A DNA stretch of 64,000 nucleotides, from contig NC_133619.1 in NCBI RefSeq assembly GCF_048593235.1, forward strand, positions 165,678,454 through 165,742,453. Direction: 5' to 3'. Numbering within the stretch: position 1 is the stretch's first letter; each line of letters opens with the position of its first letter. The position numbers were made by a program, and so were the translations under genes. The notes beneath the pieces are model-generated. The model searched no databases. It had not been told where the DNA came from and was given only the letters and a program-made list of their open reading frames with translations. The stretch comes from Sminthopsis crassicaudata (lineage: Eukaryota). Below are positions 2,485 to 55,225 of this stretch, in pieces.

Positions 2485-2660
2485 GATAAAGTCCTAGAGA
2501 GATGAGTTTGGAAAGTCAATGCCAGTAAAGGGATGAGGGCAGTGAAAATGTTTATGCTTTTAGAGCCATAGTTTCCTGCTTATCAGCCCCCGAGCACAAG
2601 GACCACCAAGTCCTTCCCCTGGAGACAGCAGCTGACAAGTGCAAGAACACGCTCCTGGAG

Positions 2661-3632
2661 ATGTGGAGGATCTTACAAACCAAAGAAGGGAAACTTCAAA
2701 TTTCACTGGGCACATTGAGAAGAAGAGAGGCACAATTCAGAGAGAGTTCCTACACTTTCAAAGAGTCAGCTAATACTGAATATGGGAAAATTCACCAGTC
2801 TTGGAGGGATGAAGAATGTCAACACCTGGAAAGGCTGGAGCAGCGATCCCGAGACTATCTGGTCAACCTGGAGGAGAAGGAGAATGAGCTGTCCCAACAA
2901 ATCCAGCATCTACAAGAAATGCTGTTCCAGGTAGAAGAGAATTTGGACAAGATGCCTTTGGCAATGATCCAGGATATGCCAGGCACTTTGAAAAACAAGG
3001 AAGAGCTCCTACTTAACAAACCAGAGCTTTCTTACATTTCCTGGCCTGTCTGCCCTGTCACAGGCATGAGAGAAATGCTCATGAGTTTCTACAGAGATAT
3101 AACTTTTGATCCTGAATCAGCCCATCCTCATCTCATCCTGTCTGAAGATTTGAAGAGGGTCCAGTATGGAAGCATCTGTCAAGACCTGCCTGACAACAAA
3201 GGGAGATTTGACGCTTCTCTTGTGGTTTTGGGAGCCCAGAAATTCACCTCAGGAAAACACTATTGGGAAGTGGGCTATAAGACAGAGTGGGAATTGGGCA
3301 TCTGTAAAGATTCAGTCAGGAGAAAGGGCCTGATCTCCTCCTCCTCCTCTGGGGATATAAGTACCCTCATGGGCTTCATATGTGGCAATGGATTCTTCCT
3401 CTGGGATTCAAAAAAAGACTGTCAATGCAGCTTACCTGTGCAAAAATTGGGCATTTTTCTGGATTATGAAATGAGCACTATAGCATTTTATGATGTCATC
3501 GACAGATCCCTTATCTACAGTAACTCAAACATAGATTGTGAAGGACCTCTTTGCCCTTATTTCTCGCCTTACCTTCTCTGTGGAGAAAGCACCACTGGTT
3601 CACTCATCATTTGCCCCAAGAGTCCACAGTAG
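2661..3632 (+). CDS. TRIM type A, 5'-truncated: coiled-coil + PRY-SPRY ORF, 323 aa (gene or young pseudogene)
   Basis: Real ATG at 2661; ITFDPESAHPHLILSED, GAQKFTSGKHYWEV, GIFLDYE, PYFSP motifs; TRIM homology starts at ~2574 in the middle of the B-box; AATAAA at 3739-3744. Confidence 0.75.
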   Translation: MWRILQTKEGKLQISLGTLRRREAQFRESSYTFKESANTEYGKIHQSWRDEECQHLERLEQRSRDYLVNLEEKENELSQQIQHLQEMLFQVEENLDKMPLAMIQDMPGTLKNKEELLLNKPELSYISWPVCPVTGMREMLMSFYRDITFDPESAHPHLILSEDLKRVQYGSICQDLPDNKGRFDASLVVLGAQKFTSGKHYWEVGYKTEWELGICKDSVRRKGLISSSSSGDISTLMGFICGNGFFLWDSKKDCQCSLPVQKLGIFLDYEMSTIAFYDVIDRSLIYSNSNIDCEGPLCPYFSPYLLCGESTTGSLIICPKSPQ

Positions 3633-4355
3633 AAGGCTATCACAGATGTTAATTACTATGGATGATCCTCTCTGACAAATGAGTAAATATGATACTGACA
3701 GTGACATTCTATTTCTTTGAATTCCTGTTTAAATGGTCAATAAAGTGATGTGTCATTAGTAAAACCAAATGAAATAGAATCTGTCTTCTTTTTACTTCTA
3801 CTCATAAAAACTGACAGGTTATTTTTTTCCCTTGCTGGCTGATTTGTAGCATCTCAAGTGGAAGGAAAAGCAGAGAGAAAAAAGGAGGAAAGGACTAAAA
3901 AAAGGAAAATAGGAATCAAAAATTTCCAAATATTTTAGGAGGAAGAGCAAAATCTCAAATGCTAAATTATCTTATGTATGAACAACAAATAAGCAACTCA
4001 GCTAAAAAGAAAAAAACAGTCAAAAAAAAGAATGAATGAATGAATAAGGAAAAGGGTGAAATTTTCTCTTGTCCTAGGGAAGTGGGAATGGAAAGACTAT
4101 TGTTCTGAGTTTGAAACAAGTTCAGCTTGAGGAACATAGTCAAATCAAGGATCTTCTACTGAAGAAAGTGATATAAGACACTACAGACATAAACGTCTTG
4201 TGAACGAGTGTAATACATTAGTCTTCAACTATGTAAAACATGAAAGGAAAATATTTTCGCAAAAATACTTTCATTTTTATCTTCTGTTTTTGGCCTTTCC
4301 CTTGTAGAATTTTTGTCCCTCTTTTTGGAGCTATTGTAAAATGCAATATAGATAT

Positions 4356-7912: not shown

Positions 7913-7924
7913 GTATTACAGAGT

Positions 7925-8641
7925 GAGCATACCCTTTGACGCAGCAGTACTACTACTGGGCTTATATCCCAAAGAAATACTAAAGAAGGGAAAGAGACCT
8001 GTATGTGCCAAAATGTTTATGGCAGCTCTTTTTGTTGTAGCTAGAAACTGGAAGATGAATGGATGTCCATCAATTAGAGAATGGTTGGGTAAATTATGGT
8101 ATATGAAGGTTATGGAATATTATTGCTCTGTAAGAAATGACCAGCAGGAGGAATACAGAGAGGCTTGGAGTGACTTACATCAACTGATGCTGAGTGAAAT
8201 GAACAGAACCAGAAGATCTCTGCATACTTCATTGTTGTGTGAAGATGTATTCTGATGGAAGTGGATATCTTCAACATAAAGAAGATCCAACTCACTTCCA
8301 ATTGATCAATGATGGACAGAAATAACTACACCCAGAGAAGGAACACTGGGAAGTGAATGTAAATTGTTAGCACTACTGTTTATCTACCCAGGTTACTTAT
8401 ACCTTCGGAATCTAATACTTAATGTGCAACAAGAAAATGGTATTTACACACATATATTGTATCTAGGTTATATTGTAACGTATGTAAAATTTATGAGATT
8501 GCCTGTCATCAAGGGGAGGGAGTAGAGGGAGGGAGGGGAAATTTTGGAAAAATGAATACAAGGGATAATTTTATATTTTTTAAAAAATTACTCATGCATA
8601 TATACTGTGGAAAAAAATTTCTAAATAAAATTTTATAAAAA
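7925..8641 (+). mobile_element. 5'-truncated L1 (ORF2 C-terminus + 3' UTR)
   Basis: [14 protein letters not shown]...WYMKVMEYY motif; A-rich tail; direct repeat GTATTACAGAGT at 7913-7924 and 8642-8653. Confidence 0.9.
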
Positions 8642-10261: not shown

Positions 10262-11382
10262 AAATGAATGAACAATAAAATAGTAAATAAAGCATATAAA
10301 CATTGTAAGTGCATACCCATTTGTGGCAAAGGGATTGGCGTTATTCTGAGCACCCAGAATCTGGGGCTTGCTTCTTGCTCTGTTCTTCAGCAGTATGAAT
10401 TTAGAATTAAGAGTGCTAACTTTTCAGGAAGACTATGAATCTGAGAGCCTTTTATTTAAACCAAGAAAACTCTGGCTACATTGTTAATCCTTCTTACCAT
10501 AAAAAGGAGAAGTCATGTTTTTTTTCCTTTGGTGACTAATCTTCCAGCACCTAATTGGGAAGGGGAGGCTGTTAGAAGAATAGGAGAAGAAACCTGAGGA
10601 AAATAAAAGAGAAGGAAAAAACTTCCAAGTACAAAAGGAGGAAGAGCAAAATTTGGAATGCTAAATCGCAGTAGGAATATCTAAACAACCAAGCAGATAA
10701 GGAAGCAAAGATATAAAGAAAGAAAAGGAAGAAGCCTTTTCTTGGTTGAAAGTCTAGGCAGATGGGTAGGGAAAGTCTATTGCTCTGAGTGAGAGGGATC
10801 TACTGGAGGATCATAGCAGACTCAAAGATCTTGCAGGAAATAAGAAAATATAAGAGAGGTACAGGTAGAAAGGTGTTGTGAAGGATTGCAATAAATTAGT
10901 CCTCAATTGAGTAGGAAATTGAGCCAGACGTTTTGCCAAATATGCTTTCATTTTTTCTCTTGTACAAGTTTCTGTACCTCTTCTCAGAGCTATCCCATTA
11001 TGGAATACAAGCTAGAACATGGGTGATACCGTCACCATGTGTCTGTGTTAAAGTCCCATTTTTAAAGCCAATTAAACACAAGTTGCAATGTTTTGAAATT
11101 TTGAAGAGTAAAATCACTGTGGTCTAAAGTGCCTAGGTGTGAACAGCATTGTGTATCTGTAATTTCATTGGAGTATTTTTAAAAGGGGACCAATGGTGAC
11201 AACACAGCCCCAGGGAAGACAGTTGAAGCACTATGCAAAGTGGGAGTTCTCACCTTCTGAGCAGTAAATAAAAGAACCTGGATGAGGCAAACAATGAAAA
11301 ATAAATGATAGGAACTCACTTCTCACTTCTTTGTGGCAAGAACCAAAAAGAGAACGCAATCTTTTTTCTCAGTTGAATATCT

Positions 11383-12286
11383 TTTTTTTTTTTTTTAGTT
11401 AAAATTTTTTTATTATAGCTTTTTATATACAAAACATATGCATGGGTAGTTTTTCAACATTGACCCTTGCAAAATTCTTTGTTTTAACTTTTCCCCTCCT
11501 TCCCTCCACCCTCTCCCCTGGATAGCAGGTAGTCCCATACATCTTAAATATGTTAAATTATATGTTTTGTTTTATAATATTATCCCTTGTATTCATTTTT
11601 CCAAATTATCCCCCCCTCCCTCCACTCCCACCCCTAGATGACAGGCAATCCCATACATATTACATGTGTTACAATATAACCTAGATACAATATATGTGTG
11701 TAAATACCATTTTCTTGTTGCACATTAAGTATTAGATTCTGAAGGTATAAGTAACCTGGGTAGAGAGACAGTAGTGCTAACAATTTACATTCACTTCCCA
11801 GTGTTTCTTCTCTGGGTGTTGTTATTTCTGCCCATCATTGATCACCTGGAAGTGAGTTGGATCTTCTCTATGTTGAAGATATCCACTTCCATCAGAATAC
11901 ATCTTCATACAGCATTAAAGTGTACAGCGATGTTCTGGTTCTGTTCATTTCACTCAGCATCAGTTGATGTCAGTCTCTCCAAACCTCTCTATATTCCTCC
12001 TGCTGGTCATTTCTTACAGAGCAATAATATTCCATAACCTTCATATACCATAATTTACCCAACCATTCTCCAATTGATGGGCATCCATTTGTCTTCCAGT
12101 TTCTAGTTACAACAAAAAGAGCTGCCACAAACATTTTGGCACATACAGGTCCCTTTCTGCTCTTTAGTATTTCTTTGGGATATAATTCCAATAGCAGTAA
12201 TGCTGGGTCAAAGGGTATGCACAATTTGATAACTCTTTGGGCATAGTTCCAAATTGCTCTCCAGAATGGCTGGATTCTTTCACATG
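11383..12286 (-). mobile_element. 5'-truncated L1 with two different 3' ends (unit copy 1)
   Basis: ORF2 C-terminal motif on minus strand; TSD AGTTGAATATCT at 11371-11382 and 12287-12298. Confidence 0.9.
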
Positions 12287-12841
12287 AGTTGAATATCTAA
12301 AAAGAAAGGAATCAGAAATAATGTCCTCCTAAAAAATCTTTTATAAATATAAATGTGTCTTAATCTGATGATTGAGTCATAATTATAAAATGAGGCAAAA
12401 AATGTGAAATAAGGGGGTTGATATAACAAAGGTTGATACTTGTTTTCTTCATGAAAGCCATGGGTGGGAAGCAATTTCTGAAAAAAAAGATTTTGTTTGG
12501 GGTGGGGGAGGAAGGATGGTGTGGGGGGAGGGTGTGGGTGTTGTGGTTGGGGGGGGGGGATTTTTCGTTGCCATGTTTCCATCTCAGCACATCAGAGAGG
12601 TGATGTGTTGAGGCTTACAAATGAGAATGTCATTGCTAAGTGACCCAATAAGGAGATGTCTCCAAATTCAAGGAGGGAGGGAAGGAGTTTTCTTCTCAAG
12701 AGTTGCTGACTCTGAAGGGTGGGATTAGAAGGAAGGTGAGAACTCAGCCCTCAAGCAGAGAGTGGAAATCCTCTCAAAAGACAAGAGTTCTCACCTTGTT
12801 GGGGGTGGAGTTAAGAGAAGGGCTAAGCAGAGGAAGAGAGA

Positions 12842-12848
12842 TATAAAA
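12842..12848 (+). promoter_or_regulatory. candidate TATA box of the array TRIM gene (also 16831, 20819, 24807, 28794)
   Basis: TATAAAAG consensus ~105 bp upstream of the relic ancestral start and ~330 bp upstream of the first in-frame ATG; not verified by transcript data. Confidence 0.55.
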
Positions 12849-12949
12849 GGCTCAACCAGCTCAGTGCCAAGGTCTTTTGCTGCCAGAGCACAAGGGCTGG
12901 AGCTAGCTCTCTCCCTACCTGAAAAGGAAGGAATCAGAGCTTTAGGAAC

Positions 12950-13174
12950 ATACATGCAAGAGTGTCATTAAAAACCTGCAGCTAGGTCTCACTTCCTTGC
13001 ATCTGCCTGAACTTCCTCATTGACTGGGTGACTGAGAGTACAGAGTGTGTCTTCTCCAGGGCAGTGAGGGAGTCACTGAAACCTCAACCTGTGCAGAGGG
13101 CAGGGGAGTCATTCATCAGACAGGCTGACTTGCTGCTGAGCAGGAACCTGCATTCTCAGTGCACCACTGGCAAG
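12950..13174 (+). pseudogene. relic RING-coding segment in the 5' leader (repeated in every unit)
   Basis: Frame-hopping translation gives IKNLQLGLTC / ICLNFLIDWVT / TEC / LLQGSEGVTETSTCAE(G or C)RGVI / DLLLSRNL; the CxHxxC core is absent. Confidence 0.8.
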
Positions 13175-14365
13175 ATGCTCCAACCTCACCTGCTGCAGAA
13201 AGAGCTGGGCCTCAGCACCTGTGATCAACATGGAGAATGTGCGATGTTCTTCTGTGAGGAAGACCAGAGAGCCCTCTGTGATTCCTGCTTATCAGCCCCA
13301 GAGCACAAGGACCACCAAGTCCTTCCCTTGGAGACAGCAGCTGACAAGTGCAAGAACACGCTCCTGGAGATGTGCAGGATCTTACACACCAAAGAAGAGA
13401 AACTTCAAATTGCACTGGGCACACTGAGAAGAAGAGAGGCACAGGTCACAGAGCGTTCCAACACTTTGAAACAGTCAACTTTTTCTGAATTTTGGAAAAT
13501 TCAACAGTTCTTGAGGAATGAAAAATATGAATACCAAAAAAGATTGGTTAAGGTATCCAGAAGCAACCTGCTCCAACTAGAAGAGTATAAGAACAAGTTG
13601 TTCCAAGGAAAACAAAAGCTGCAACAAATGATGATAGAAGTGGAGGAGAATTTGGACAAGATGCCCTTGGAAATGATCCAGGCTGTGCCAGGCACTTTGA
13701 AAAAAAATGAAGAATTTGCACTCCAATGGCCAGTGTTTCCTCTCATTACCTGGCCTTTCTGCCCCATTACAGGCATGGCAGAATTTCTCATGAGTTTCCA
13801 CAGGGATATAACTCTTGATCCTGAATCAGCCCATCCTCATCTCATCCTGTCTGAAGATTTGAAGAGCGTCCAGTATGGAAGCATTCGTCAAGACCTGCCT
13901 GACAACAAAGAGAGATTTGATTCTGTTCTCGGGGTTTTGGGAGCCCAGAAATTCACCTCAGGCAAACACTACTGGGAAGTAGAGGTGGGAGACAAGACAG
14001 AGTGGGTATTGGGCATCTGTAAAGATTCAGTCAGGAGAAAAGGGAAACTCTCATTTGAGGAGATAATGACCATTGCAGCATTCAGAGCTGGAAATGCTTT
14101 CTTCTTCTGTACTTCAGACAAGAAATTTCAATTGGCCTGGCCTCTGCACAAAGTGGGCATTTTTCTTGATTGGGAAAACCAACAATTAGCATTTTATGAT
14201 GTCACACACAGATCCCTTGTCCACAGGCAATCAAACATCGATTTGGAAGGGCCTCTTCGCCCTTATTTCTCTCCTTGCCGTCCCAAGGAAAGAAGCACCC
14301 CTGGTTCACTCATCATTTGCCCCAAGAGTCCACAGGAGAGGCCTGCCACAGGGCCTAAATACTAA
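13175..14365 (+). CDS. TRIM type B copy 1: RING-less B-box2/coiled-coil/PRY-SPRY protein, 396 aa, intronless
   Basis: First in-frame ATG (AAGATGC) at 13175; B-box2 C-x2-H-x7-C-x2-D-x4-C-x2-C-x5-H-x2-H; ITLDPESAHPHLILSEDL; FTSGKHYWEVEVG; PLRPYFSP. Confidence 0.9.
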   Translation: MLQPHLLQKELGLSTCDQHGECAMFFCEEDQRALCDSCLSAPEHKDHQVLPLETAADKCKNTLLEMCRILHTKEEKLQIALGTLRRREAQVTERSNTLKQSTFSEFWKIQQFLRNEKYEYQKRLVKVSRSNLLQLEEYKNKLFQGKQKLQQMMIEVEENLDKMPLEMIQAVPGTLKKNEEFALQWPVFPLITWPFCPITGMAEFLMSFHRDITLDPESAHPHLILSEDLKSVQYGSIRQDLPDNKERFDSVLGVLGAQKFTSGKHYWEVEVGDKTEWVLGICKDSVRRKGKLSFEEIMTIAAFRAGNAFFFCTSDKKFQLAWPLHKVGIFLDWENQQLAFYDVTHRSLVHRQSNIDLEGPLRPYFSPCRPKERSTPGSLIICPKSPQERPATGPKY

Positions 14366-14444: not shown

Positions 14445-14450
14445 AATAAA
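14445..14450 (+). terminator. polyadenylation signal AATAAA of the array gene (also 18434, 22422, 26410, 30397)
   Basis: AATAAA 80 nt after the stop; the equivalent site is kept in type A copies (3739, 33121). Confidence 0.6.
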
Positions 14451-16274: not shown

Positions 16275-17163
16275 AGTTGAATATCTAAAAAGAAAGGAAT
16301 CAGAAATAATGTCCTCCTAAAAAATCTTTTATAAATATAAATGTGTCTTAATCTGATGATTGAGTCATAATTATAAAATGAGGCGAAAAATGTGAAATAA
16401 GGGGGTTGATATAGCAAAGGTTGATACTTGTTTTCTTCATGAAAGCCATGGGTGGGAAGCAATTTCTGAAAAAAAAGATTTTGTTTGGGGTGGGGGAGGA
16501 AGGGTGGTGTGGGGGGAGGGTGTGGGTGTTGTGGTTGGGGGGGGGGGGATTTTTCGTTGCCATGTTTCCATCTCAGCACATCAGAGAGGTGATGTGTTGA
16601 GGCTTACAAATGAGAATGTTATTGCTAAGTGACCCAATAAGGAGATGTCTCCAAGTTCAAGGAGGGAGGGAAGGAGTTTTCTTCTCAAGAGTTGCTGACT
16701 CTGAAGGGTGGGATTAGAAGGAAGGTGAGAACTCAGCCCTCAAGCAGAGAGTGGAAATCCTCTCAAAAGACAAGAGTTCTCACCTTGTTGGGGGTGGAGT
16801 TAAGAGAAGGGCTAAGCAGAGGAAGAGAGATATAAAAGGCTCAACCAGCTCAGTGCCAAGGTCTTTTGCTGCCAGAGCACAAGGGCTGGAGCTAGCTCTC
16901 TCCCTACCTGAAAAGGAAGGAATCAGAGCTTTAGGAACATACATGCAAGAGTGTCATTAAAAACCTGCAGCTAGGTCTCACTTGCTTGCATCTGCCTGAA
17001 CTTCCTCATTGACTGGGTGACTGAGAGTACAGAGTGTGTCTTCTCCAGGGCAGTGAGGGAGTCACTGAAACCTCAACCTGTGCAGAGGGCAGGGGAGTCA
17101 TTCATCAGACAGGCTGACTTGCTGCTGAGCAGGAACCTGCATTCTCAGTGCACCACTGGCAAG

Positions 17164-18354
17164 ATGCTCCAACCTCACCTGCTGCAGAAAGAGCTGGGCC
17201 TCAGCACCTGTGATCAACATGGAGAACGAGCGATGTTCTTCTGTGAGGAAGACCAGAGAGCCCTCTGTGATTCCTGCTTATCAGCCCCAGAGCACAAGGA
17301 CCACCAAGTCCTTCCCTTGGAGACAGCAGCTGACAAGTGCAAGAACACGCTCCTGGAGATGTGCAGGATCTTACACACCAAAGAAGAGAAACTTCAAATT
17401 GCACTGGGCACACTGAGAAGAAGAGAGGCACAGGTCACAGAGCGTTCCAACACTTTGAAACAGTCAACTTTTTCTGAATTTTGGAAAATTCAACAGTTCT
17501 TGAGGAATGAAAAATATGAATACCAAAAAAGATTGGTTAAGGTATCCAGAAGCAACCTGCTCCAACTAGAAGAGTATAAGAACAAGTTGTTCCAAGGAAA
17601 ACAAAAGCTGCAACAAATGATGATAGAAGTGGAGGAGAATTTGGACAAGATGCCCTTGGAAATGATCCAGGCTGTGCCAGGCACTTTGAAAAAAAATGAA
17701 GAATTTGCACTCCAATGGCCAGTGTTTCCTCTCATTACCTGGCCTTTCTGCCCCATTACAGGCATGGCAGAATTTCTCATGAGTTTCCACAGGGATATAA
17801 CTCTTGATCCTGAATCAGCCCATCCTCATCTCATCCTGTCTGAAGATTTGAAGAGCGTCCAGTATGGAAGCATTCGTCAAGACCTGCCTGACAACAAAGA
17901 GAGATTTGATTCTGTTCTCGGGGTTTTGGGAGCCCAGAAATTCACCTCAGGCAAACACTACTGGGAAGTAGAGGTGGGAGACAAGACAGAGTGGGTATTG
18001 GGCATCTGTAAAGATTCAGTCAGGAGAAAAGGGAAACTCTCATTTGAGGAGATAATGACCATTGCAGCATTCAGAGCTGGAAATGCTTTCTTCTTCTGTA
18101 CTTCAGACAAGAAATTTCAATTGGCCTGGCCTCTGCACAAAGTGGGCATTTTTCTTGATTGGGAAAACCAACAATTAGCATTTTATGATGTCACACACAG
18201 ATCCCTTGTCCACAGGCAATCAAACATCGATTTGGAAGGGACTCTTCGCCCTTATTTCTCTCCTTGCCGTCCCAAGGAAAGAAGCACCCCTGGTTCACTC
18301 ATCATTTGCCCCAAGAGTCCACAGGAGAGGCCTGCCACAGGGCCTAAATACTAA
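17164..18354 (+). CDS. TRIM type B copy 2, 396 aa
   Basis: As copy 1; differs by C->R in the B-box and P->T in SPRY. Confidence 0.9.
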   Translation: MLQPHLLQKELGLSTCDQHGERAMFFCEEDQRALCDSCLSAPEHKDHQVLPLETAADKCKNTLLEMCRILHTKEEKLQIALGTLRRREAQVTERSNTLKQSTFSEFWKIQQFLRNEKYEYQKRLVKVSRSNLLQLEEYKNKLFQGKQKLQQMMIEVEENLDKMPLEMIQAVPGTLKKNEEFALQWPVFPLITWPFCPITGMAEFLMSFHRDITLDPESAHPHLILSEDLKSVQYGSIRQDLPDNKERFDSVLGVLGAQKFTSGKHYWEVEVGDKTEWVLGICKDSVRRKGKLSFEEIMTIAAFRAGNAFFFCTSDKKFQLAWPLHKVGIFLDWENQQLAFYDVTHRSLVHRQSNIDLEGTLRPYFSPCRPKERSTPGSLIICPKSPQERPATGPKY

Positions 18355-20262: not shown

Positions 20263-21151
20263 AGTTGAATATCTAAAAAGAAAGGAATCAGAAATAATGT
20301 CCTCCTAAAAAATCTTTTATAAATATAAATGTGTCTTAATCTGATGATTGAGTCATAATTATAAAATGAGGCAAAAAATGTGAAATAAGGGGGTTGATAT
20401 AGCAAAGGTTGATACTTGTTTTCTTCATGAAAGCCATGGGTGGGAAGCAATTTCTGAAAAAAAAGATTTTGTTTGGGGTGGGGGAGGAAGGGTGGTGTGG
20501 GGGGAGGGTGTGGGTGTTGTGGTTGGGGGGGGCGGGATTTTTCGTTGCCATGTTTCCATCTCAGCACATCAGAGAGGTGATGTGTTGAGGCTTACAAATG
20601 AGAATGTTATTGCTAAGTGACCCAATAAGGAGATGTCTCCAAGTTCAAGGAGGGAGGGAAGGAGTTTTCTTCTCAAGAGTTGCTGACTCTGAAGGGTGGG
20701 ATTAGAAGGAAGGTGAGAACTCAGCCCTCAAGCAGAGAGTGGAAATCCTCTCAAAAGACAAGAGTTCTCACCTTGTTGGGGGTGGAGTTAAGAGAAGGGC
20801 TAAGCAGAGGAAGAGAGATATAAAAGGCTCAACCAGCTCAGTGCCAAGGTCTTTTGCTGCCAGAGCACAAGGGCTGGAGCTAGCTCTCTCCCTACCTGAA
20901 AAGGAAGGAATCAGAGCTTTAGGAACATACATGCAAGAGTGTCATTAAAAACCTGCAGCTAGGTCTCACTTGCTTGCATCTGCCTGAACTTCCTCATTGA
21001 CTGGGTGACTGAGAGTACAGAGTGTGTCTTCTCCAGGGCAGTGAGGGAGTCACTGAAACCTCAACCTGTGCAGAGGGCAGGGGAGTCATTCATCAGACAG
21101 GCTGACTTGCTGCTGAGCAGGAACCTGCATTCTCAGTGCACCACTGGCAAG

Positions 21152-22342
21152 ATGCTCCAACCTCACCTGCTGCAGAAAGAGCTGGGCCTCAGCACCTGTG
21201 ATCAACATGGAGAACGAGCGATGTTCTTCTGTGAGGAAGACCAGAGAGCCCTCTGTGATTCCTGCTTATCAGCCCCAGAGCACAAGGACCACCAAGTCCT
21301 TCCCTTGGAGACAGCAGCTGACAAGTGCAAGAACACGCTCCTGGAGATGTGCAGGATCTTACACACCAAAGAAGAGAAACTTCAAATTGCACTGGGCACA
21401 CTGAGAAGAAGAGAGGCACAGGTCACAGAGCGTTCCAACACTTTGAAACAGTCAACTTTTTCTGAATTTTGGAAAATTCAACAGTTCTTGAGGAATGAAA
21501 AATATGAATACCAAAAAAGATTGGTTAAGGTATCCAGAAGCAACCTGCTCCAACTAGAAGAGTATAAGAACAAGTTGTTCCAAGGAAAACAAAAGCTGCA
21601 ACAAATGATGATAGAAGTGGAGGAGAATTTGGACAAGATGCCCTTGGAAATGATCCAGGCTGTGCCAGGCACTTTGAAAAAAAATGAAGAATTTGCACTC
21701 CAATGGCCAGTGTTTCCTCTCATTACCTGGCCTTTCTGCCCCATTACAGGCATGGCAGAATTTCTCATGAGTTTCCACAGGGATATAACTCTTGATCCTG
21801 AATCAGCCCATCCTCATCTCATCCTGTCTGAAGATTTGAAGAGCGTCCAGTATGGAAGCATTCGTCAAGACCTGCCTGACAACAAAGAGAGATTTGATTC
21901 TGTTCTCGGGGTTTTGGGAGCCCAGAAATTCACCTCAGGCAAACACTACTGGGAAGTAGAGGTGGGAGACAAGACAGAGTGGGTATTGGGCATCTGTAAA
22001 GATTCAGTCAGGAGAAAAGGGAAACTCTCATTTGAGGAGATAATGACCATTGCAGCATTCAGAGCTGGAAATGCTTTCTTCTTCTGTACTTCAGACAAGA
22101 AATTTCAATTGGCCTGGCCTCTGCACAAAGTGGGCATTTTTCTTGATTGGGAAAACCAACAATTAGCATTTTATGATGTCACACACAGATCCCTTGTCCA
22201 CAGGCAATCAAACATCGATTTGGAAGGGACTCTTCGCCCTTATTTCTCTCCTTGCCGTCCCAAGGAAAGAAGCACCCCTGGTTCACTCATCATTTGCCCC
22301 AAGAGTCCACAGGAGAGGCCTGCCACAGGGCCTAAATACTAA
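21152..22342 (+). CDS. TRIM type B copy 3, 396 aa
   Basis: Protein identical to copy 2 in the ORF track. Confidence 0.88.
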   Translation: MLQPHLLQKELGLSTCDQHGERAMFFCEEDQRALCDSCLSAPEHKDHQVLPLETAADKCKNTLLEMCRILHTKEEKLQIALGTLRRREAQVTERSNTLKQSTFSEFWKIQQFLRNEKYEYQKRLVKVSRSNLLQLEEYKNKLFQGKQKLQQMMIEVEENLDKMPLEMIQAVPGTLKKNEEFALQWPVFPLITWPFCPITGMAEFLMSFHRDITLDPESAHPHLILSEDLKSVQYGSIRQDLPDNKERFDSVLGVLGAQKFTSGKHYWEVEVGDKTEWVLGICKDSVRRKGKLSFEEIMTIAAFRAGNAFFFCTSDKKFQLAWPLHKVGIFLDWENQQLAFYDVTHRSLVHRQSNIDLEGTLRPYFSPCRPKERSTPGSLIICPKSPQERPATGPKY

Positions 22343-24250: not shown

Positions 24251-25139
24251 AGTTGAATATCTAAAAAGAAAGGAATCAGAAATAATGTCCTCCTAAAAAA
24301 TCTTTTATAAATATAAATGTGTCTTAATCTGATGATTGAGTCATAATTATAAAATGAGGCAAAAAATGTGAAATAAGGGGGTTGATATAGCAAAGGTTGA
24401 TACTTGTTTTCTTCATGAAAGCCATGGGTGGGAAGCAATTTCTGAAAAAAAAGATTTTGTTTGGGGTGGGGGAGGAAGGGTGGTGTGGGGGGAGGGTGTG
24501 GGTGTTGTGGTTGGGGGGGGCGGGATTTTTCGTTGCCATGTTTCCATCTCAGCACATCAGAGAGGTGATGTGTTGAGGCTTACAAATGAGAATGTTATTG
24601 CTAAGTGACCCAATAAGGAGATGTCTCCAAGTTCAAGGAGGGAGGGAAGGAGTTTTCTTCTCAAGAGTTGCTGACTCTGAAGGGTGGGATTAGAAGGAAG
24701 GTGAGAACTCAGCCCTCAAGCAGAGAGTGGAAATCCTCTCAAAAGACAAGAGTTCTCACCTTGTTGGGGGTGGAGTTAAGAGAAGGGCTAAGCAGAGGAA
24801 GAGAGATATAAAAGGCTCAACCAGCTCAGTGCCAAGGTCTTTTGCTGCCAGAGCACAAGGGCTGGAGCTAGCTCTCTCCCTACCTGAAAAGGAAGGAATC
24901 AGAGCTTTAGGAACATACATGCAAGAGTGTCATTAAAAACCTGCAGCTAGGTCTCACTTGCTTGCATCTGCCTGAACTTCCTCATTGACTGGGTGACTGA
25001 GAGTACAGAGTGTGTCTTCTCCAGGGCAGTGAGGGAGTCACTGAAACCTCAACCTGTGCAGAGGGCAGGGGAGTCATTCATCAGACAGGCTGACTTGCTG
25101 CTGAGCAGGAACCTGCATTCTCAGTGCACCACTGGCAAG

Positions 25140-26330
25140 ATGCTCCAACCTCACCTGCTGCAGAAAGAGCTGGGCCTCAGCACCTGTGATCAACATGGAG
25201 AACGAGCGATGTTCTTCTGTGAGGAAGACCAGAGAGCCCTCTGTGATTCCTGCTTATCAGCCCCAGAGCACAAGGACCACCAAGTCCTTCCCTTGGAGAC
25301 AGCAGCTGACAAGTGCAAGAACACGCTCCTGGAGATGTGCAGGATCTTACACACCAAAGAAGAGAAACTTCAAATTGCACTGGGCACACTGAGAAGAAGA
25401 GAGGCACAGGTCACAGAGCGTTCCAACACTTTGAAACAGTCAGCTTTTTCTGAATTTTGGAAAATTCAACAGTTCTTGAGGAATGAAAAATATGAATACC
25501 AAAAAAGATTGGTTAAGGTATCCAGAAGCAACCTGCTCCAACTAGAAGAGTATAAGAACAAGTTGTTCCAAGGAAAACAAAAGCTGCAACAAATGATGAT
25601 AGAAGTGGAGGAGAATTTGGACAAGATGCCCTTGGAAATGATCCAGGCTGTGCCAGGCACTTTGAAAAAAAAGGAAGAATTTTCACTCCAAAGGCCATTG
25701 TTTCCTTTCATTACCTGGCCTTTCTGCCCCATTACAGGCATGGCAGAATTTCTCATGAGTTTCCACAGGGATATAACTCTTGATCCTGAATCAGCCCATC
25801 CTCATCTCATCCTGTCTGAAGATTTGAAGAGCGTCCAGTATGGAAGCATTCGTCAAGACCTGCCTGACAACAAAGAGAGATTTGATTCTGTTCTCGGGGT
25901 TTTGGGAGCCCAGAAATTCACCTCAGGCAAACACTACTGGGAAGTAGAGGTGGGAGACAAGACAGAGTGGGTATTGGGCATCTGTAAAGATTCAGTCAGG
26001 AGAAAAGGGAAACTCTCATTTGAGGAGATAATGACCATTGCAGCATTCAGAGCTGGAAATGCTTTCTTCTTCTGTACTTCAGACAAGAAATTTCAATTGG
26101 CCTGGCCTCTGCACAAAGTGGGCATTTTTCTTGATTGGGAAAAGCAACAATTAGCATTTTATGATGTCACACACAGATCCCTTGTCCACAGGCAATCAAA
26201 CATCGATTTGGAAGGGCCTCTTCGCCCTTATTTCTCTCCTTGCCGTCCCAAGGAAAGAAGCACCCCTGGTTCACTCATCATTTGCCCCAAGAGTCCACAG
26301 GAGAGGCCTGCCACAGGTCCTAAATACTAA
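25140..26330 (+). CDS. TRIM type B copy 4, 396 aa
   Basis: Intact ORF; 8 residues differ from copy 3. Confidence 0.9.
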   Translation: MLQPHLLQKELGLSTCDQHGERAMFFCEEDQRALCDSCLSAPEHKDHQVLPLETAADKCKNTLLEMCRILHTKEEKLQIALGTLRRREAQVTERSNTLKQSAFSEFWKIQQFLRNEKYEYQKRLVKVSRSNLLQLEEYKNKLFQGKQKLQQMMIEVEENLDKMPLEMIQAVPGTLKKKEEFSLQRPLFPFITWPFCPITGMAEFLMSFHRDITLDPESAHPHLILSEDLKSVQYGSIRQDLPDNKERFDSVLGVLGAQKFTSGKHYWEVEVGDKTEWVLGICKDSVRRKGKLSFEEIMTIAAFRAGNAFFFCTSDKKFQLAWPLHKVGIFLDWEKQQLAFYDVTHRSLVHRQSNIDLEGPLRPYFSPCRPKERSTPGSLIICPKSPQERPATGPKY

Positions 26331-28239: not shown

Positions 28240-29126
28240 AGTTGAATATCTAAAAAGAAAGGAATCAGAAATAATGTCCTCCTAAAAAATCTTTTATAAA
28301 TATAAATGTGTCTTAATCTGATGATTGAGTCATAATTATAAAATGAGGCAAAAAATGTGAAATAAGGGGGTTGATATAGCAAAGGTTGATACTTGTTTTC
28401 TTCATGAAAGCCATGGGTGGGAAGCAATTTCTGAAAAAAAGATTTTGTTTGGGGTGGGGGAGGAAGGGTGGTGTGGGGGGAGGGTGTGGGTGTTGTGGTT
28501 GGGGGGGGGGGATTTTTCGTTGCCATGTTTCCATCTCAGCACATCAGAGAGGTGATGTGTTGAGGCTTACAAATGAGAATGTTATTGCTAAGTGACCCAA
28601 TAAGGAGATGTCTCCAAGTTCAAGGAGGGAGGGAAGGAGTTTTCTTCTCAAGAGTTGCTGACTCTGAAGGGTGGGGTTAGAAGGAAGGTGAGAACTCAGC
28701 CCTCAAGCAGAGAGTGGAAATCCTCTCAAAAGACAAGAGTTCTCACCTTGTTGGGGGTGGAGTTAAGAGAAGAGTTAAGCAGAGGAAGAGAGATATAAAA
28801 GGCTCAACCAGCTCAGTGCCAAGGTCTTTTGCTGCCAGAGCACAAGGGCTGGAGCTAGCTCTCTCCCTACCTGAAAAGGAAGGAATCAGAGCTTTAGGAA
28901 CATACATGCAAGAGTGTCATTAAAAACCTGCAGCTAGGTCTCACTTGCTTGCATCTGCCTGAACTTCCTCATTGACTGGGTGACTGAGAGTACAGAGTGT
29001 GTCTTCTCCAGGGCAGTGAGGGAGTCACTGAAACCTCAACCTGTGCAGAGTGCAGGGGAGTCATTCATCAGACAGGCTGACTTGCTGCTGAGCAGGAACC
29101 TGCATTCTCAGTGCACCACTGGCAAG

Positions 29127-30317
29127 ATGCTCCAACCTCACCTGCTGCAGAAAGAGCTGGGCCTCAGCACCTGTGATCAACATGGAGAACGAACGATGTT
29201 CTTCTGTGAGGAAGACCACAGAGCCCTCTGTGATTCCTGCTTATCAGCCCCAGAGCACAAGGACCACCAAGTCCTTCCCTTGGAGACAGCAGCTGACAAG
29301 TGCAAGAACACGCTCCTGGAGATGTGCAGCATCTTACACATCAAAGAAGAGAAACTTCAAATTGCACTGGGCACACTGAGAAGAAGAGAGGCACAGGTCA
29401 CAGAGCATTCCAACACTTTGAAACAGTCAGTTTTTTCTGAATTTTGGAAAATTCAACAGTTCTTGAGGAATGAAAAATATGAATACCAAAAAAGATTGGT
29501 TAAGGTATCCACAAGTAACCTGCTCCAACTAGAAGAGTATAAGAACAAGTTGTTCCAAGGAAAACAAAAGCTGCAACAAATGATGATAGAAGTGGAGGAG
29601 AATTTGGACAAGATGCCCTTGGAAATGATCCAGGCTGTGCCAGGCACTTTGAAAAAAAAGGAAGAATTTTCACTCCAAAGGCCATTGTTTCCTTTCATTA
29701 CCTGGCCTTTCTGCCCCATTACAGGCATGGCAGAATTTCTCATGAGTTTCCACAGGGATATAACTCTTGATCCTGAATCAGCCCATCCTCATCTCATCCT
29801 GTCTGAAGATTTGAAGCGCGTCCAGTATGGAAGCAAACGTCAAGACCTGCCTGACAACAAAGAGAGATTTGATTCTGTTCTCGGGGTTTTGGGAGCCCAG
29901 AAATTCACCTCAGGCAAACACTACTGGGAAGTAGAGGTGGGAGACAAGACAGAGTGGGTATTGGGCATCTGTAAAGATTCAGTCAGGAGAAAAGGGAAAC
30001 TCTCATTTGAGGAGATAATGACCATTGCAGCATTCAGAGCTGGAAATGCTTTCTTCTTCTGTACTTCAGACAAGAAATTTCAATTGGCCTGGCCTCTGCA
30101 CAAAGTGGGCATTTTTCTTAATTGGGAAAAGCAACAATTAGCATTTTATGATGTCACACACAGATCCCTTGTCCACATGAAATCAAACATCGATTTGGAA
30201 GGGCCTCTTCGCCCTTATTTCTCTCCTTGCCGTCCCAAGGAAAGAAGCACCCCTGGTTCACTCATCATTTGCCCCAAGAGTCCACAGGAGAGGCCTGCCA
30301 CAGGTCCTAAATACTAA
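29127..30317 (+). CDS. TRIM type B copy 5, 396 aa (most diverged)
   Basis: Intact ORF; 12 residues differ from copy 4. Confidence 0.9.
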   Translation: MLQPHLLQKELGLSTCDQHGERTMFFCEEDHRALCDSCLSAPEHKDHQVLPLETAADKCKNTLLEMCSILHIKEEKLQIALGTLRRREAQVTEHSNTLKQSVFSEFWKIQQFLRNEKYEYQKRLVKVSTSNLLQLEEYKNKLFQGKQKLQQMMIEVEENLDKMPLEMIQAVPGTLKKKEEFSLQRPLFPFITWPFCPITGMAEFLMSFHRDITLDPESAHPHLILSEDLKRVQYGSKRQDLPDNKERFDSVLGVLGAQKFTSGKHYWEVEVGDKTEWVLGICKDSVRRKGKLSFEEIMTIAAFRAGNAFFFCTSDKKFQLAWPLHKVGIFLNWEKQQLAFYDVTHRSLVHMKSNIDLEGPLRPYFSPCRPKERSTPGSLIICPKSPQERPATGPKY

Positions 30318-32233: not shown

Positions 32234-32444
32234 GTTCTCACATTTGGAGTAGTAAATAAAAGAACCTTCACGGGGCAAACAATGAAAAATAATAATAATA
32301 ATAATAGTAACTCACTTCTCAGATCTTTGTGACCAAACTTCCGGAGATAGGGAGAATCTAACAAGATTGAAAAACAAGGAAGAGCTCCTACTTAACAAAC
32401 CAGAGCTTTCTTACATTTCCTGTCCTACCTGCCCTGTCACAGGC

Positions 32445-33014
32445 ATGAGAGAAACGCTCATGAGTTTCCACAGGGATATAACTTTTGATCCTCAATCAAC
32501 CCATCCTCATCTCAATCTGTCTGAAGATTTGAAGAGTGTCCAGTATGGAAGCATCTGTCAAGACCTGCCTGACAACAAAGGGAGATTTGACGCTTCTCTT
32601 GTGGTTTTGGGAGCCCAGACATTCACCTCAGGAAAACACTATTGGGAAGTGGAGATGGGAGATAAGGCAGAGTGGGAATTGGGCATCTGTAAAGATTCAG
32701 TCAGGAGAAAGGACCTGATCTCCTCCTCATCTGGAGATATAAGTACCCTCATGGGCTTCATATCTGGCAATGGATTCTTCCTCTGGGATTCAGAAAAAGA
32801 TTGTCAATGCAGCTTACCTGTGCAAAAATTGGGCATTTTTCTGGATTATGAAATGAGCTATATAACATTTTATGATGTCATGGGCAGATCCCTTATCTAC
32901 AGTAACTCAAACATATATTGTGGAGGGCCTCTTTGCCCTTACTTCTCTCCTTACCTTCTCTATGGAGAAAGCACCACTGGTTCACTCATCATTTGCCCCA
33001 AGATTCCACAGTAG
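32445..33014 (+). CDS. TRIM type A, PRY-SPRY-only ORF, 189 aa from the first ATG (gene fragment or young pseudogene)
   Basis: TRIM homology starts abruptly at 32367 (TTG, not a real start); first ATG at 32445; full PRY-SPRY motifs; AATAAA at 33121. Confidence 0.6.
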   Translation: MRETLMSFHRDITFDPQSTHPHLNLSEDLKSVQYGSICQDLPDNKGRFDASLVVLGAQTFTSGKHYWEVEMGDKAEWELGICKDSVRRKDLISSSSGDISTLMGFISGNGFFLWDSEKDCQCSLPVQKLGIFLDYEMSYITFYDVMGRSLIYSNSNIYCGGPLCPYFSPYLLYGESTTGSLIICPKIPQ

Positions 33015-44834: not shown

Positions 44835-47800
44835 TTTTTAATTTAATTTTTATTTTATTTTATAATTATAACTTTTTTTTGACAGTACATATGCATGGGT
44901 AATTTTTTACAACATTATCCCTTGCACTTACTTTTATTCAGATTTTTTCCCTTCCTCCCCCAACCCCCTCCCCCAGATGGCAGGCAGTCTTATACATGTT
45001 AAATATATTACAGTATATTCTAGATACAATATATGTGTGTAGAACCGAATTTTTTGTTGCACAGGAAGAATTGGATTCAGAAGGTAAAAATAACAGTTTA
45101 CACTCATTTCCCAGTGTTCCTTTTCTGAGTATAGCTGATTCTGTCCATCATTAATCAATTGGAATTGGATTAGCTCTTCTCTATGTTGAAGATATCCACT
45201 TCCATCAGCATACATCCTCGTACAGTATCATTGTTGAAGTGTATAATGATCTTCTGGTTCTGCTCATTTCACTTAGCATCAGTTGATATAAGTCTCTCCA
45301 GGCCTCTCTGTATTTCTCCTGTTGGTCATTTCTTATAGAACAATAATATTCCATAACATTCATATACCATAATTTACCCAACCATTCTCCAATTGATGGA
45401 CATCCATTCATCTTCCAGCTTCTAGCCACTATGAAAAGGGCTGCCACAAACATTTTGGCACATACAGGTCCCTTTCCCTTCTTTAGTATTTCCTTGGGAT
45501 ATAAGCCCAGTAGTAGTATGGCTGGGTCAAAGGGTATGCACATTTTGATAACTTTTTGGGCATAATTCCAGATTACTCTCCAGAATGGTTGGATTCTTTC
45601 ACAACTCCACCAACAATGCATCAGTGTCCCAGTTTTCCCACAGCCCCTCCAACATTCATCGTTATTTGTTCCTGTCATCTTAGCCAATCTGACAGGTGTG
45701 TAGTAGTGGTATCTCAGAGTTGTCTTAATTTGCATTTCTCTGATCAACAGTGATTTGGAACACTCTTCATATGAATGGAAATAGTTTTAATTTCATCATC
45801 TGAAAATTGTCTGTTCATATCCTTTGACCATTTATCAATTGGAGAATGGCTTGATTTCTTATAAATTAAAGTCAATTCTCTGTATATTTTGGAGATGAGG
45901 CCTTTATCAGAACCTTTAACTGTAAAAATGTTTTCCCAATTTGTTACTTCTCTTCTAATCTTGTTTGCATTAGTTTTGTTTGTGCAGAAACTTTTTAATT
46001 TGGTGTAATCAAAATTTTCTATTTTGTGATCAATAATGGTCTCTAGTTCTCCCTTGGACACAAACTCCTTCCTCCTCCACAAGTCTGAGAGGTAAACCAT
46101 CCCATGTTCCTCCAATTTATTTATGATTTTGTTCTTTATGCCCAAATCTTGGACCCATTTTGATCTAATCTTAGTATGTGGCGTTAAATGTGGATCCATA
46201 TCTAATTTCTGCCATACTAATTTCCAGTTTTCCCAGCAGTTTTTGTCAAATAATGAATTCTTATCCCAAAATTTGAGATCTTTGGGTTTGTCAAAGATTA
46301 GATTGCTATTTTTATTCACTATTTTGCCCTGTGAACCTAACCTATGCCACTGATCAAGTAGTCTATTTCTTAGCCAATACCAAATGGTTTTGGTGACTGT
46401 TGCTTTATAATATAGCTTTAAATCAGGTACACTTAGACCACCTTCCTCTGACTTTTTTTTCATTAGTTCCCTTGCAATTCTCGACCTTTTATTCTTCCAT
46501 ATGAATTTTGTTGTTATTTTTTTCTAGGTCATTAAAATAGTTTCTTGGGAGTCTGATTGGTATAGCACTAAATAAATAGATTAGTTTGGGGAGTATTGTC
46601 ATCTTTATTATATTCGCTCGGCCTATCCAAGAGCACTGAATGTCTTTCCAATTATTTAAATCTGACTTTATTTTTGTGGCAAGTGTTTTGTAATTTTGCT
46701 CATATAATTCCTGACTCTCCTTTGGTAGATATATTCCCAAATATTTTATACTATCGACTGTTATTTTGAATGGAATTTCTCTTTGTATCTCTTGCTGTTG
46801 GATTGTGTTGGTAATGTATAAAAATGCTGAGGATTTATGTGGATTTATTTTGTACCCTGCAACTTTGCTAAAATTCTGAATTATTTCTAATAGCTTTTTA
46901 GCAGAGTCTTTGGGGTTATCTAAGTATACCATCATGTCATCTGCGAAAAGTGATAATTTGATTTCCTCATTTCCTAATCTAATTCCTTGAATCTCTTTCT
47001 CAACTCTTATTGCCGAGGCTAGAGTTTCTAGTACTATATTGAATAGTAATGGTGATAGTGGGCAACCTTGTTTCACTCCTGATCTTACAGGGAAAGGTTC
47101 TAGTTTATCACCATTACATATGATGTGTACTGAAGGTTTTAAATATATGCTCCTTATTATTTTAAGGAATAGTCCATTTATTCCTATACTCTCAAGCGTT
47201 TTTAGTAGGAATGGATGTTGGATTTTATCAAATGCTTTTTCTGCATCTATTGAGATGATCATATGGTTTTTATTAATTTGATTATTAATATGGTCGATTA
47301 TACTAATAGTTTTCCTAATATTAAACCAGTCCTGCATTCCTGGTATAAATCCCACTTGGTCATAGTGTATTATCCTGGGGATGATTTTCTGAAGTCTATT
47401 TGCTAATATCTTATTTAAGATTTTAGCATCAATATTCATTAAAGAAATTGGTCTATAGTTTTCTTTCTCAGTTTTCGATCTACCTGGTTTAGGTATCAGT
47501 ACCATGTCTGTGTCATAGAAGGAATTTGGTAGGACTCCTTCAATCCCTATTTTTTCAAATAGTTTATATAGCATTGGAGTTAGTTGTTCTTTAAATGTTT
47601 GGTAGAATTCACCTGTAAATCCATCTGGTCCTGGGGACTTTTTCTTAGGAAGTTGGTTAATAGCTTGGTCTATTTCTTTTTCTGAGATGGGACTATTTAG
47701 ACTACTTACTTCTTCCTCTGTTAATCTGGGCAAGCTATATTTTTGAAGGTATTCTTCCATTTCATTTAAGTTATCGAATTTATCGGCATAAAGCTGAGCA

Positions 47801-48373
47801 AAGTAGCTCCTAACTATTGTTCTAATTTCCTCTTCATTAGTGGTGAGTTCACCCTTTTCATTTTCAAGACTAACAATTTGCTTTTTCTCTTTCCTTTTTT
47901 TAATCAGGTTTACTAAGGGTTTGTCCATTTTGTTGGTTTTTTCATAAAACCAACTCTTAGTTTTATTAATTAATTCAATAGTTTTTTTACTTTCAATTTT
48001 ATTAATCTCACCTTTTATTTTTTGAATTTCAAGTTTTGTGTTTGTCTGGGGGTTTTTAATTTGCTCCTTTTCTAGCAATTTTAGTTGTAAGCCCAATTCG
48101 TTGGCCCTTTCTTTCTCTATTTTATGCAAGTAGGCCTGTAGAGATATAAAACTTCCCCTTATTACTGCTTTGGCTGTATCCCAGACATTTTGGTATGATG
48201 TCTCATTATTGTCATTTTCTTGGGTGAAGTTATTAATTATGTCTATGATTTGCTGTTTTACCCAATCATTCTTTAGTATAAGATTATTTAGTTTCCAATT
48301 ATTTTTTGGTCTATTTTCCCCTGGCTTTTTATTAAATGTAATTTTGAATTGCATTATGGTCTGAAAAGGATGA
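44835..48373 (-). mobile_element. 5'-truncated L1 (3.5 kb), ORF2 broken into three frames, nested in an L2 remnant
   Basis: RT motifs ([27 protein letters not shown]); begins in the endonuclease end (SDHNAI); 13-bp TSD CTTCTTGTGTTTT at 44822-44834 and 48374-48386; flanks join into an L2-like 3' end. Confidence 0.95.
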
Positions 48374-49784: not shown

Positions 49785-50590
49785 AAGATGATGGGAAAGA
49801 TAATGATAAATATTGTTGGGGATATGGGGAAAACTGGGACATTAATACATCACTGATAGGATTGTGAAATGATCCATCCATTCTGGAGAGCAACTTGGAA
49901 CTATGCCCAAAGGGTGTCTCTACTGGATCTGTATCCCAAGGAGATCATAAAAGAGGAAAAAGAACCCACACGTGCAAAAATATTTGTGGCAGTTCTTTTT
50001 ATAGTGTCAAGAAACTGGAAATTGAGTGAATGTTCATCAGTTAGGAGGATGGCTGAATAAGTTATGGTATATGAATGTAATGGAATATTATGATTTCATA
50101 AGAAATGATGCGCAGGCTCTTTTCAGAAAAGCCTGGAGTTACAAGAACTGATGCTAAGTGAAGTGAGCAGAACCAAGAGAACATTGCATATGTTAAGATA
50201 TTGCATATGAGGAGATATGGTATGATCAACTGTGATGAACTTGTCTTTTTTCAACAATGAGGTGATTCAAGGAAATACCAATAAACTCATGATGGAAAGT
50301 GCCATCTGCATCCAGAGAGAGAACTATTGAGACTAAATGTGAATCAACGCATAGTTTTTTCACTTTTGTTGTTATTTGTTTTCTTGGGTTTTTTTTCCAT
50401 TCTTGTGCAGGATGATGAATATGGAAATATGGAAAAAGTAGACAAATTGAACATATTTAACCTATATCAGATTGCTAGCTGTCTTAGGATAGGGGAAGAG
50501 GGAGAAAATTTAGAGTATAAGGTTTTGCAAAGGTGAATGTTGAAAATGATTTTTGCATGTATTGGGGAAAATAATATTAATAATAAAAAT
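49785..50590 (+). mobile_element. old degenerate L1 3' fragment
   Basis: HPFWRATWNYAQR...YPKEIIK...ARNWKL-like remnants and L1 3' UTR. Confidence 0.75.
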
Positions 50591-54410: not shown

Positions 54411-55225
54411 CATATGAAAAAGTACTCCAAATTGATCAGAGAAATGCAAATTAAGACAACTCTGAGATACCACTACACACCTGTCAGATTGGCTAAGATG
54501 ACAGGAAAAGATAATGAAAAATGTTGGAGGGGATGTGGAAGAACTGGGACACTAATACATTGGTGGAATTGTGAATGGATCCAACCATTCTGGAAAGCAG
54601 TTTGAAAATATGTTCAAAAAGTTATCAAACTGTGTATACCTTTTGACTTCGCAGTGTTTCTACTGGGCTTATATCCCAAAGAGATCTTAAAAGGACAGAA
54701 AGGGACCCACATGTGCAAAAATGTTTGTGGCAGCCATTTTTGTAGTGGCAAGAAACTGGAAACTGAGTGAATGCCCATCAATTGGAGAATGGCTTAATAA
54801 ACTGTGGTATATGAATGTTATGGAATATTATTGTTCTGTAAGAAATGACCAGCAGGATGATTTCAGAGAAGCCTGGAGAGACTTATATGGACTGATGCCA
54901 AGTGAGATGAGCAGAACCAAGCGATCACTATACATGGCAATAAGAACATTATACAACAATCAATTCTGATGAACACTCTCTTCAAAAAGAAGATGATTCA
55001 AACTAGTGCCAATTGTTCAGTGATGAAGAGAGCCATCTACACCAGAGAGAGAACTGTGCAAACTGAGTGTGGTCCACAACATAGCATTCTCACTTTCTGT
55101 TGTTGTTTGCTTGCATTGTGTTTTCTGTCTCAGTTTTTTTTCTTCCTTCTTGTGCAGCAAGATAACTGTATAAATATGTATACATATATTGGATTTAACA
55201 TATATTTTAACATTTTAAAAAAAGG
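54411..55225 (+). mobile_element. 5'-truncated degenerate L1 3' end
   Basis: [22 protein letters not shown] and FVAAIFVVARNWK...WYMNVMEYY remnants. Confidence 0.85.

Follow-up and report, generated by a model that had tools for sequence, protein, structure and literature searches.

Remains of a RING domain in the 5' leader of tandemly amplified TRIML1-like genes of the dasyurid Sminthopsis crassicaudata

Results

Organization of the locus

We analysed a stretch of 64,000 nucleotides of the Sminthopsis crassicaudata genome (contig NC_133619.1, hereafter the window). It contains a tandem array of five head-to-tail units, each composed of one gene and a spacer of ~2.4 kb with a high-copy repeat (Table 1). 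Units 2 to 4 share 99.1-99.4% of their sequence with unit 1; for unit 5 the value is 96.9%. The reading frame of copy 1 is uninterrupted from 13028 to 14365, and its first ATG is at position 13175. Pfam searches with the 396-residue ORF identified B-box (PF00643, 2e-9), PRY (PF13765, 5.5e-22) and SPRY (PF00622, 2.1e-14) domains. No RING family of Pfam matched the translated ORF, which lacks the eight ligands of a C3HC4 RING. The ligand spacing of B-box2 is intact (C-x2-H-x7-C-x7-C-x2-C-x5-H-x2-H), and a putative coiled-coil region of ~160 residues, which aligns to the family, separates the B-box from PRY. As in RING-bearing relatives, which are single-exon genes (e.g. 1407 and 1410 bp for 468 and 469 residues), the coding region is intronless. 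The proteins of the five copies differ at 20 residues, from the B-box to SPRY, against very few silent changes.

Truncated, older members of the family flank the array at 2573-4278 and 32367-33654, with 73-75% DNA identity to the unit. One of them begins inside the B-box (ORF 2661-3632 with PRY/SPRY), and the other holds the PRY/SPRY part only (residues 254-466). On the minus strand, an uninterrupted ORF of 911 residues (58066-60801) harbours the full domain set of DNA ligase IV, namely the ligase N, adenylation and C domains, BRCT and the DNA_ligase_IV linker. It probably represents the LIG4 gene, in which case the array adjoins LIG4 and does not lie at a demonstrated locus of TRIML1. LIG4 is the only conserved neighbour found in the window, and dozens of marsupial 'TRIML1' paralogues exist; the published work names another, single marsupial TRIML1 orthologue group (PMC6993854).

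The spacer segment at 11300-12358, like the same part of each unit, is a very high-copy repeat (summed contig depth of about a million in three runs), and related pieces are found at 7924-8575, 44857-45603, 49863-50187, 54570-54919 and 63409-63987. A reverse-transcriptase ORF of 621 residues (45205-48354, minus strand; RVT_1, 2e-49) is followed downstream on the same strand by two more open frames, as in a fairly intact retroelement.

Table 1. Features of the array, of the decayed RING sequence of copy 1 and of its gene. All are on the plus strand.
Feature	Position	Remarks
Tandem array	10454-31007	five head-to-tail units of 3987-3989 bp
TATA box, copy 1	12842-12849	TATAAAAG; ~108 nt upstream of the old ATG; ancestral promoter
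RING fossil and linker, copy 1	12950-13174	5' leader; from alignments and profile search
Former start codon	12950-12952	ATA; ATG in intact genes
Upstream ORF	12954-12971	ATG CAA GAG TGT CAT TAA; five codons; arose in the wreck of the old start
1-bp deletion	near 12962/12963	after AAGAG; DNA alignment
Cys1 codon	12994-12996	TCC
1-bp insertion	12997-13000	in TTGC; DNA alignment
Cys2 codon	13004-13006	TGC
16-bp deletion	between 13038 and 13039	C-G-H core lost, with zinc ligands Cys3 and His4
Cys5 codon	13039-13041	TAC
Cys6 codon	13048-13050	TGT
Cys7 codon	13090-13092	TGT
Cys8 codon	13099-13101	GGC
4-bp TCAT duplication	13109-13116	returns reading to the frame of the retained ORF
Coding sequence, copy 1	13175-14365	396 residues; B-box2, coiled-coil region, PRY, SPRY; no RING
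Polyadenylation signal, copy 1	14445-14450	AATAAA; read in the sequence
Copy 2	16939-18354	RING fossil 16939-17163; coding sequence 17164-18354
Copy 3	20927-22342	RING fossil 20927-21151; coding sequence 21152-22342, identical to copy 2
Copy 4	24915-26330	RING fossil 24915-25139; coding sequence 25140-26330
Copy 5	28902-30317	RING fossil 28902-29126; coding sequence 29127-30317 (protein P0001)

The leader aligns to RING codons

A preliminary description of this DNA had proposed that a broken RING is still spelled upstream of the ATG. Sequence comparisons confirmed this reading: the segment 12950-13174, like its counterparts in the other four copies, is what decay has left of the RING codons of an intronless, immune-type TRIML1-like gene. 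When copy 1 was aligned with the genomic DNA of Dromiciops P0026 (L005) and Antechinus P0040 (L006), whose RING is intact, its leader matched the 5' UTR, the start codon and then the RING codons of these genes. The local alignment of 12950-13115 with the Dromiciops RING codons scored 78, compared with 18.3 +/- 2.5 for 300 dinucleotide-type shuffles (z = 24). The N-termini of eleven relatives with a RING also served as tblastn queries against the leader. In one frame, CICLNFLIDWVT aligned to CSICLGYFTDPVT, and in another CLLQGSEGVTETSTCAEGRGVI aligned to CLLQCKEEDDETFTCPECRGVI, the latter match covering the C-terminal half of the RING with E = 1.6e-5 in the small leader database; a gap is present at the expected place of KCGHSFC.

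Next to these alignments, an hmm profile built from 33 RINGs of the family was run against 4273 stop-free pieces from the six frames of the window. The five leaders ranked first and were the sole significant matches (E-values of 6.4e-6 in copy 5 and 6.7e-4 in the other four), and no intact RING-like piece was detected with this profile on either strand of the 64 kb. The match of the leader to RING sequences, whose absence would have spoken against the preliminary description, was significant with all three approaches. Pfam returned zero matches for the stop-free leader pieces even at E = 10; they are too short and broken for it, and DNA alignment and a profile specific to the family were needed.

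The alignments located the individual lesions (Table 1). At the old start, copy 1 reads ATA CAT GCA, as had been noticed, where the intact genes have ATG GAT GTA. The peptide fragments quoted in the preliminary description are visible in the three-frame translation of 12950-13180, and the single-base insertion that it mentioned is present in TTGC. The shortage of about 18 nt that it placed at the RING core is real, but its size is 16 bp in the DNA alignment. Similarly, the LTC motif that it read holds for copies 2-5 (TGC), but not for copy 1, which has TCC (Ser) at position 12995. Its observation on the last RING cysteine stands: the codon is TGC in copy 5 only and GGC in copies 1-4 (position 13099, equivalent to 29051). 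The net length change of the fossil in copy 1 is -12 nt, and because the indels sum to this value, the frame is open again from 12986.

Three of the eight zinc-ligand codons are kept in copy 1 (Cys2, Cys6 and Cys7), in two different frames and all upstream of the start, and five of the eight are kept in copy 5. The five leaders, of 331 nt each, carry identical lesions and differ at positions 12995 and 13099 only. Outgroup paralogues have TGC at both of these sites, indicating that TGC is ancestral there and that the fossil of copy 5 retains the ancestral codons for Cys1 and Cys8.

The RING was lost long before the array formed

All five lesions are common to copy 1, to two Sminthopsis paralogues outside the window (L001) and to Antechinus P0004. 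The two Sminthopsis paralogues lie at a 170 Mb-scale distance on the chromosome record. Sarcophilus P0005 shows three of them, namely the ATA and both single-base indels; the sites of the 16-bp deletion and of the TCAT duplication fall within its own, larger deletion and are unreadable there. In a maximum-likelihood tree computed with the B-box-to-SPRY columns only, the twelve RING-less dasyurid genes form one clade (SH-aLRT 100) nested among RING-bearing genes of Dromiciops, Trichosurus and Vombatus, and two subclades each contain Sarcophilus and Sminthopsis genes. As the lesions are shared across genera and the RING-less genes form a single clade, these sequence comparisons show that the RING had already been dismantled when Sminthopsis, Antechinus and Sarcophilus diverged.

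The amplification is far more recent, since the array copies have dS values of 0.004-0.014 and their leaders differ at 2 of 331 positions. The divergence of the fossil is about 0.2 between genera compared with 0.009 within the array, and by these estimates the loss of the RING is older than the amplification by at least an order of magnitude. The intronless coding region recalls a processed retrogene, but the homology among paralogues extends upstream of the TATA box; because it spans the promoter and the array unit is genomic, the recent spread took place by DNA duplication. The preliminary description had the gene lose its RING, restart, keep the rest open and then become amplified. This order fits our tests, and the lesions do precede the amplification, as all five copies carry them in identical form and other genera share them; however, the loss is far older than a recent prelude to the amplification, a scenario ruled out by the shared lesions, the tree and the fossil divergence.

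Part of the lesion sharing must be read with care. Between a Sminthopsis paralogue (L001:10480-10890) and the window (12850-13260), the promoter and leader differ by K = 0.086 only. The same P0008-like paralogue has 63% protein identity to the window gene and a coding dS of 0.28. Gene conversion thus seems to have made the 5' ends of distant paralogues alike, unless the genes are mosaic. Since such conversion would move leaders between paralogues, sharing of lesions within one genome is weaker evidence for dating; the sharing across species stands despite conversion within Sminthopsis.

The fossil drifts while the downstream frame is retained

We compared the divergence of the fossil with that of synonymous sites. 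The values are 0.216 and 0.207, respectively, between the window and Antechinus, and 0.101 and 0.103 between the window and Sminthopsis P0002, showing that, by this measure, the fossil drifts at the synonymous rate, as unconstrained DNA would. Although it is five times shorter than the coding part, the 225-nt fossil has gained additional frame-breaking indels in single lineages, and none was found in the 1.2-kb coding part of the compared dasyurid genes. We then placed the observed substitutions randomly, with 5000 trials per comparison. In the four deeper comparisons, the ORF remained open by chance in 0.6%, 0.12%, 0.04% and 0% of trials, and the B-box/coiled-coil/PRY-SPRY frame is on this basis under selection. 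The earlier proposal that the rest of the gene was kept open is thus borne out against the neutral expectation. The ratio dN/dS is 0.39-0.69 between genera and about 1.0 to the nearest paralogue, P0002; such high values suggest that the protein is weakly constrained, or that constraint and diversifying selection act on it together.

These data bear on the alternative that the whole branch of the family is dead, with the loss of the RING as the first step of pseudogenisation and the frames open only because the array is young. Several features are compatible with it: the dN/dS ratio to P0002, the ratios of 1.5-2.1 within the array (copy 5 versus the rest, based on few changes), the truncated family members on either side of the array and the openness of the array frame, which would persist by chance in 29% of trials with its 24 substitutions and is thus uninformative. 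We nevertheless regard it as improbable, because the coding frame is open over dS values of 0.1-0.3 in genes of Sminthopsis, Antechinus and Sarcophilus, with no frame-breaking indel compared with several in the much shorter fossil, because dN/dS is below 1 between genera and all B-box ligands are intact, and because a close paralogue is represented by an mRNA-like contig (see below).

Promoter and start codon of the retained gene

The TATA box lies in a promoter block that shows homology between genes with and without a RING, in four genera. This homology suggests that the gene still depends on its old promoter and that the RING wreck has become its leader by descent. Transcription is predicted to start near 12870-12880. 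The only ATG between this site and the main one is that of the upstream ORF, whose context is weak (T at -3), whereas the main ATG has A at -3. This upstream ORF is present in Antechinus and Sarcophilus and absent from the two Sminthopsis paralogues. The restart at a methionine of the linker, as proposed in the preliminary description, agrees with the ancestry of this residue: RING-bearing relatives read GKMLRPHLLQ at the same place, and independent RING-less lineages are annotated with their start at that same Met.

In run X5, RNA-like coverage is confined to 12922-14330 and stops before the AATAAA signal. The corresponding contig of 1086 nt is mRNA-like, unspliced and colinear from the fossil into the coding part; being only 95% identical to copy 1, it must derive from a different allele or a paralogue. 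Because runs X1-X3 extend over the spacers as well, and may include DNA, we did not use them as evidence of expression. We infer that the array copies are transcribed, from the predicted start site, and translated from 13175.

A very unlikely alternative is that translation begins at a non-AUG codon upstream of 13175 in the frame open from 12986 (e.g. GTG at 13028), yielding an N-terminal extension that consists in part of RING sequence read out of frame. As the indels sum to -12, 63 open codons do precede the ATG. In addition, the annotated Sminthopsis proteins P0002 (L001:6001-6150) and P0022 start at a new ATG inside the fossil, and NCBI annotates such extensions, e.g. MNETAESVFSRAV..., which carry frame-shifted RING remnants (...SVFSRAVRESLKPQ...). 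These N-termini are probably annotation artefacts, a point of practical relevance for annotators, as some database proteins of the family would bear a false N-terminus derived from the fossil. However, ATG is absent from that stretch in the window copies, and the extension lacks any Pfam match, diverges at a neutral rate and could not form a RING, since it is missing Cys3 and His4 and the codons of Cys6 to Cys8 are in another frame.

That an intact RING exon located elsewhere is spliced onto the B-box, the fossil being a bypassed old exon, is an explanation that the preliminary description had named as fatal to its proposal and that we rejected as barely conceivable, since the five fossils are the only RING-like coding pieces on either strand of the 64 kb, the RING-bearing relatives encode the RING in one exon with the B-box and immediately upstream of it, the ancestral TATA box lies just upstream of the fossil and the X5 contig is colinear through it.

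RING erosion is recurrent in the marsupial family

The closest proteins to the window gene are dozens of marsupial entries named 'probable TRIML1'. Many of the relatives of 464-473 residues have a RING, and many of those of 376-400 residues lack it. On the tree of marsupial TRIML1-like proteins, the RING state changes at least six to eight times. Dromiciops P0012 (L004:2680-3090) is RING-less by an 11-bp deletion of its own and a parallel change of ATG to ATA; its gene lies 28 kb from that of the RING-bearing P0026, which is its sister on the tree. A common origin of the Dromiciops and dasyurid losses was ruled out, as the other lesions differ and P0012 joins the RING-bearing Dromiciops gene. 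Half of the RING survives in Phascolarctos P0036 and in Vombatus P0033, where it is the second half and is in frame. Given the number of state changes and the separate cases in Dromiciops, Vombatus and Phascolarctos, RING erosion is, as far as sequences tell, a recurrent fate in this family.

Discussion

The reading that we favour, and consider very likely, is that the 5' untranslated leader contains a true RING fossil, that the surviving frame restarted at the linker Met and that the array arose later. An ancestral single-exon gene for a RING/B-box/coiled-coil/PRY-SPRY protein lost its start codon and accumulated four frame-breaking indels in the RING. With its promoter and TATA box retained, the wreck is still placed for transcription as a leader, and the next usable ATG is that of the pre-existing Met in the linker that joins RING to B-box. 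Ribosomes may scan past the five-codon upstream ORF, or reinitiate after it, and start at 13175. The fossil then drifted neutrally, and the 396-codon frame was kept open in many paralogues, the protein evolving fast. The five-copy array represents a much later amplification at the DNA level.

With Cys3, His4 and the start codon gone and the frames shifted, no RING can be made, and the product is expected to be devoid of the E2-binding module. It may act as a non-catalytic TRIM protein, with dimerisation through the coiled coil and target binding via the rapidly changing SPRY surface. Such a protein might serve as a stoichiometric binder, sequestrator or decoy; alternatively, it might be a modulator and mix, through the coiled coil, with paralogues that have a RING, by analogy with the mode proposed for TRIML2 (PMC6993854). 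More speculatively, and with considerable doubt, the RING-less TRIML-type lineage that dasyurids evolved independently of TRIML2, and that has since expanded into many fast-evolving tandem copies, could act without catalysis against TRIML1-like ligases that have a RING, or against a target from a pathogen or retroelement, as their antagonist or decoy. If so, it would contradict the published view of RING-less TRIML proteins as a eutherian speciality tied to placentation.

In the one paper dealing with marsupial TRIML1, its proteins were reported to have a RING, and RING-less TRIML proteins were called eutherian-specific (PMC6993854). The many marsupial TRIML1 annotations were also held to be possibly artefactual, in part through assembly error (PMC6993854), a statement repeated later (PMC12007913). 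Our literature search found no paper on the marsupial TRIML1-like expansions or their loss of the RING. By sequence and phylogeny, the dasyurid clade is an undescribed, independent RING-less TRIML-type lineage, and the published view has to be corrected in that at least twelve RING-less genes from three dasyurid genera form one clade. The erosion of the RING in Dromiciops, Trichosurus, Vombatus and Phascolarctos also runs counter to it. The locus provides a dated example of domain loss, in which the old start codon, four indels and most RING ligand codons are still readable in the leader.

Comparison with known systems

The best non-marsupial matches of the window gene are eutherian TRIML1 proteins (~41% identity, E about 1e-74). 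TRIML2 is a RING-less TRIML1 paralogue without a B-box, proposed to act as a non-catalytic modulator (PMC6993854). As in the window gene, the RING of eutherian TRIML2 was lost after duplication, the coiled coil and PRY/SPRY were kept, and the SPRY-bearing part evolves fast. In contrast with TRIML2, the window gene has an intact B-box2, is intronless and massively duplicated and adjoins the probable LIG4 gene. It nests in the marsupial clade with eutherian TRIML1 as the outgroup, in a tree computed without TRIML2 sequences; this position and the presence of the B-box place it outside TRIML2. Its loss of the RING is an independent event inside the marsupial TRIML1-like radiation, and the parallel with TRIML2 drawn in the preliminary description is fair as an analogy between independent losses, except that the B-box is kept here.

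The closest architectural counterparts are the RING-bearing, single-exon marsupial genes (Trichosurus P0010 and P0015, Vombatus P0019 and Dromiciops P0026), whose products are 56-63% identical to those of the window genes from the B-box to SPRY. They share with the latter the single-exon layout, a homologous promoter and 5' UTR and the linker Met, and differ by their intact C3HC4 RING (Pfam 1e-10 for P0010), of which the window genes have only the wreck. Among the RING-less members outside dasyurids, Dromiciops P0012 and P0013, Trichosurus P0016, P0017 and P0021, Vombatus P0033 and Phascolarctos P0042 start at or near the linker Met and keep the B-box to SPRY part; their losses are separate from the dasyurid one.

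Loss of the RING after duplication is common among TRIM genes, and RING-less members such as TRIM14, TRIM16, TRIM20/pyrin, TRIM29 and TRIM44 are old, single and conserved genes. The window genes likewise lack the E3 module, but unlike these TRIMs they have RING codons that can still be read and are part of an active tandem amplification.
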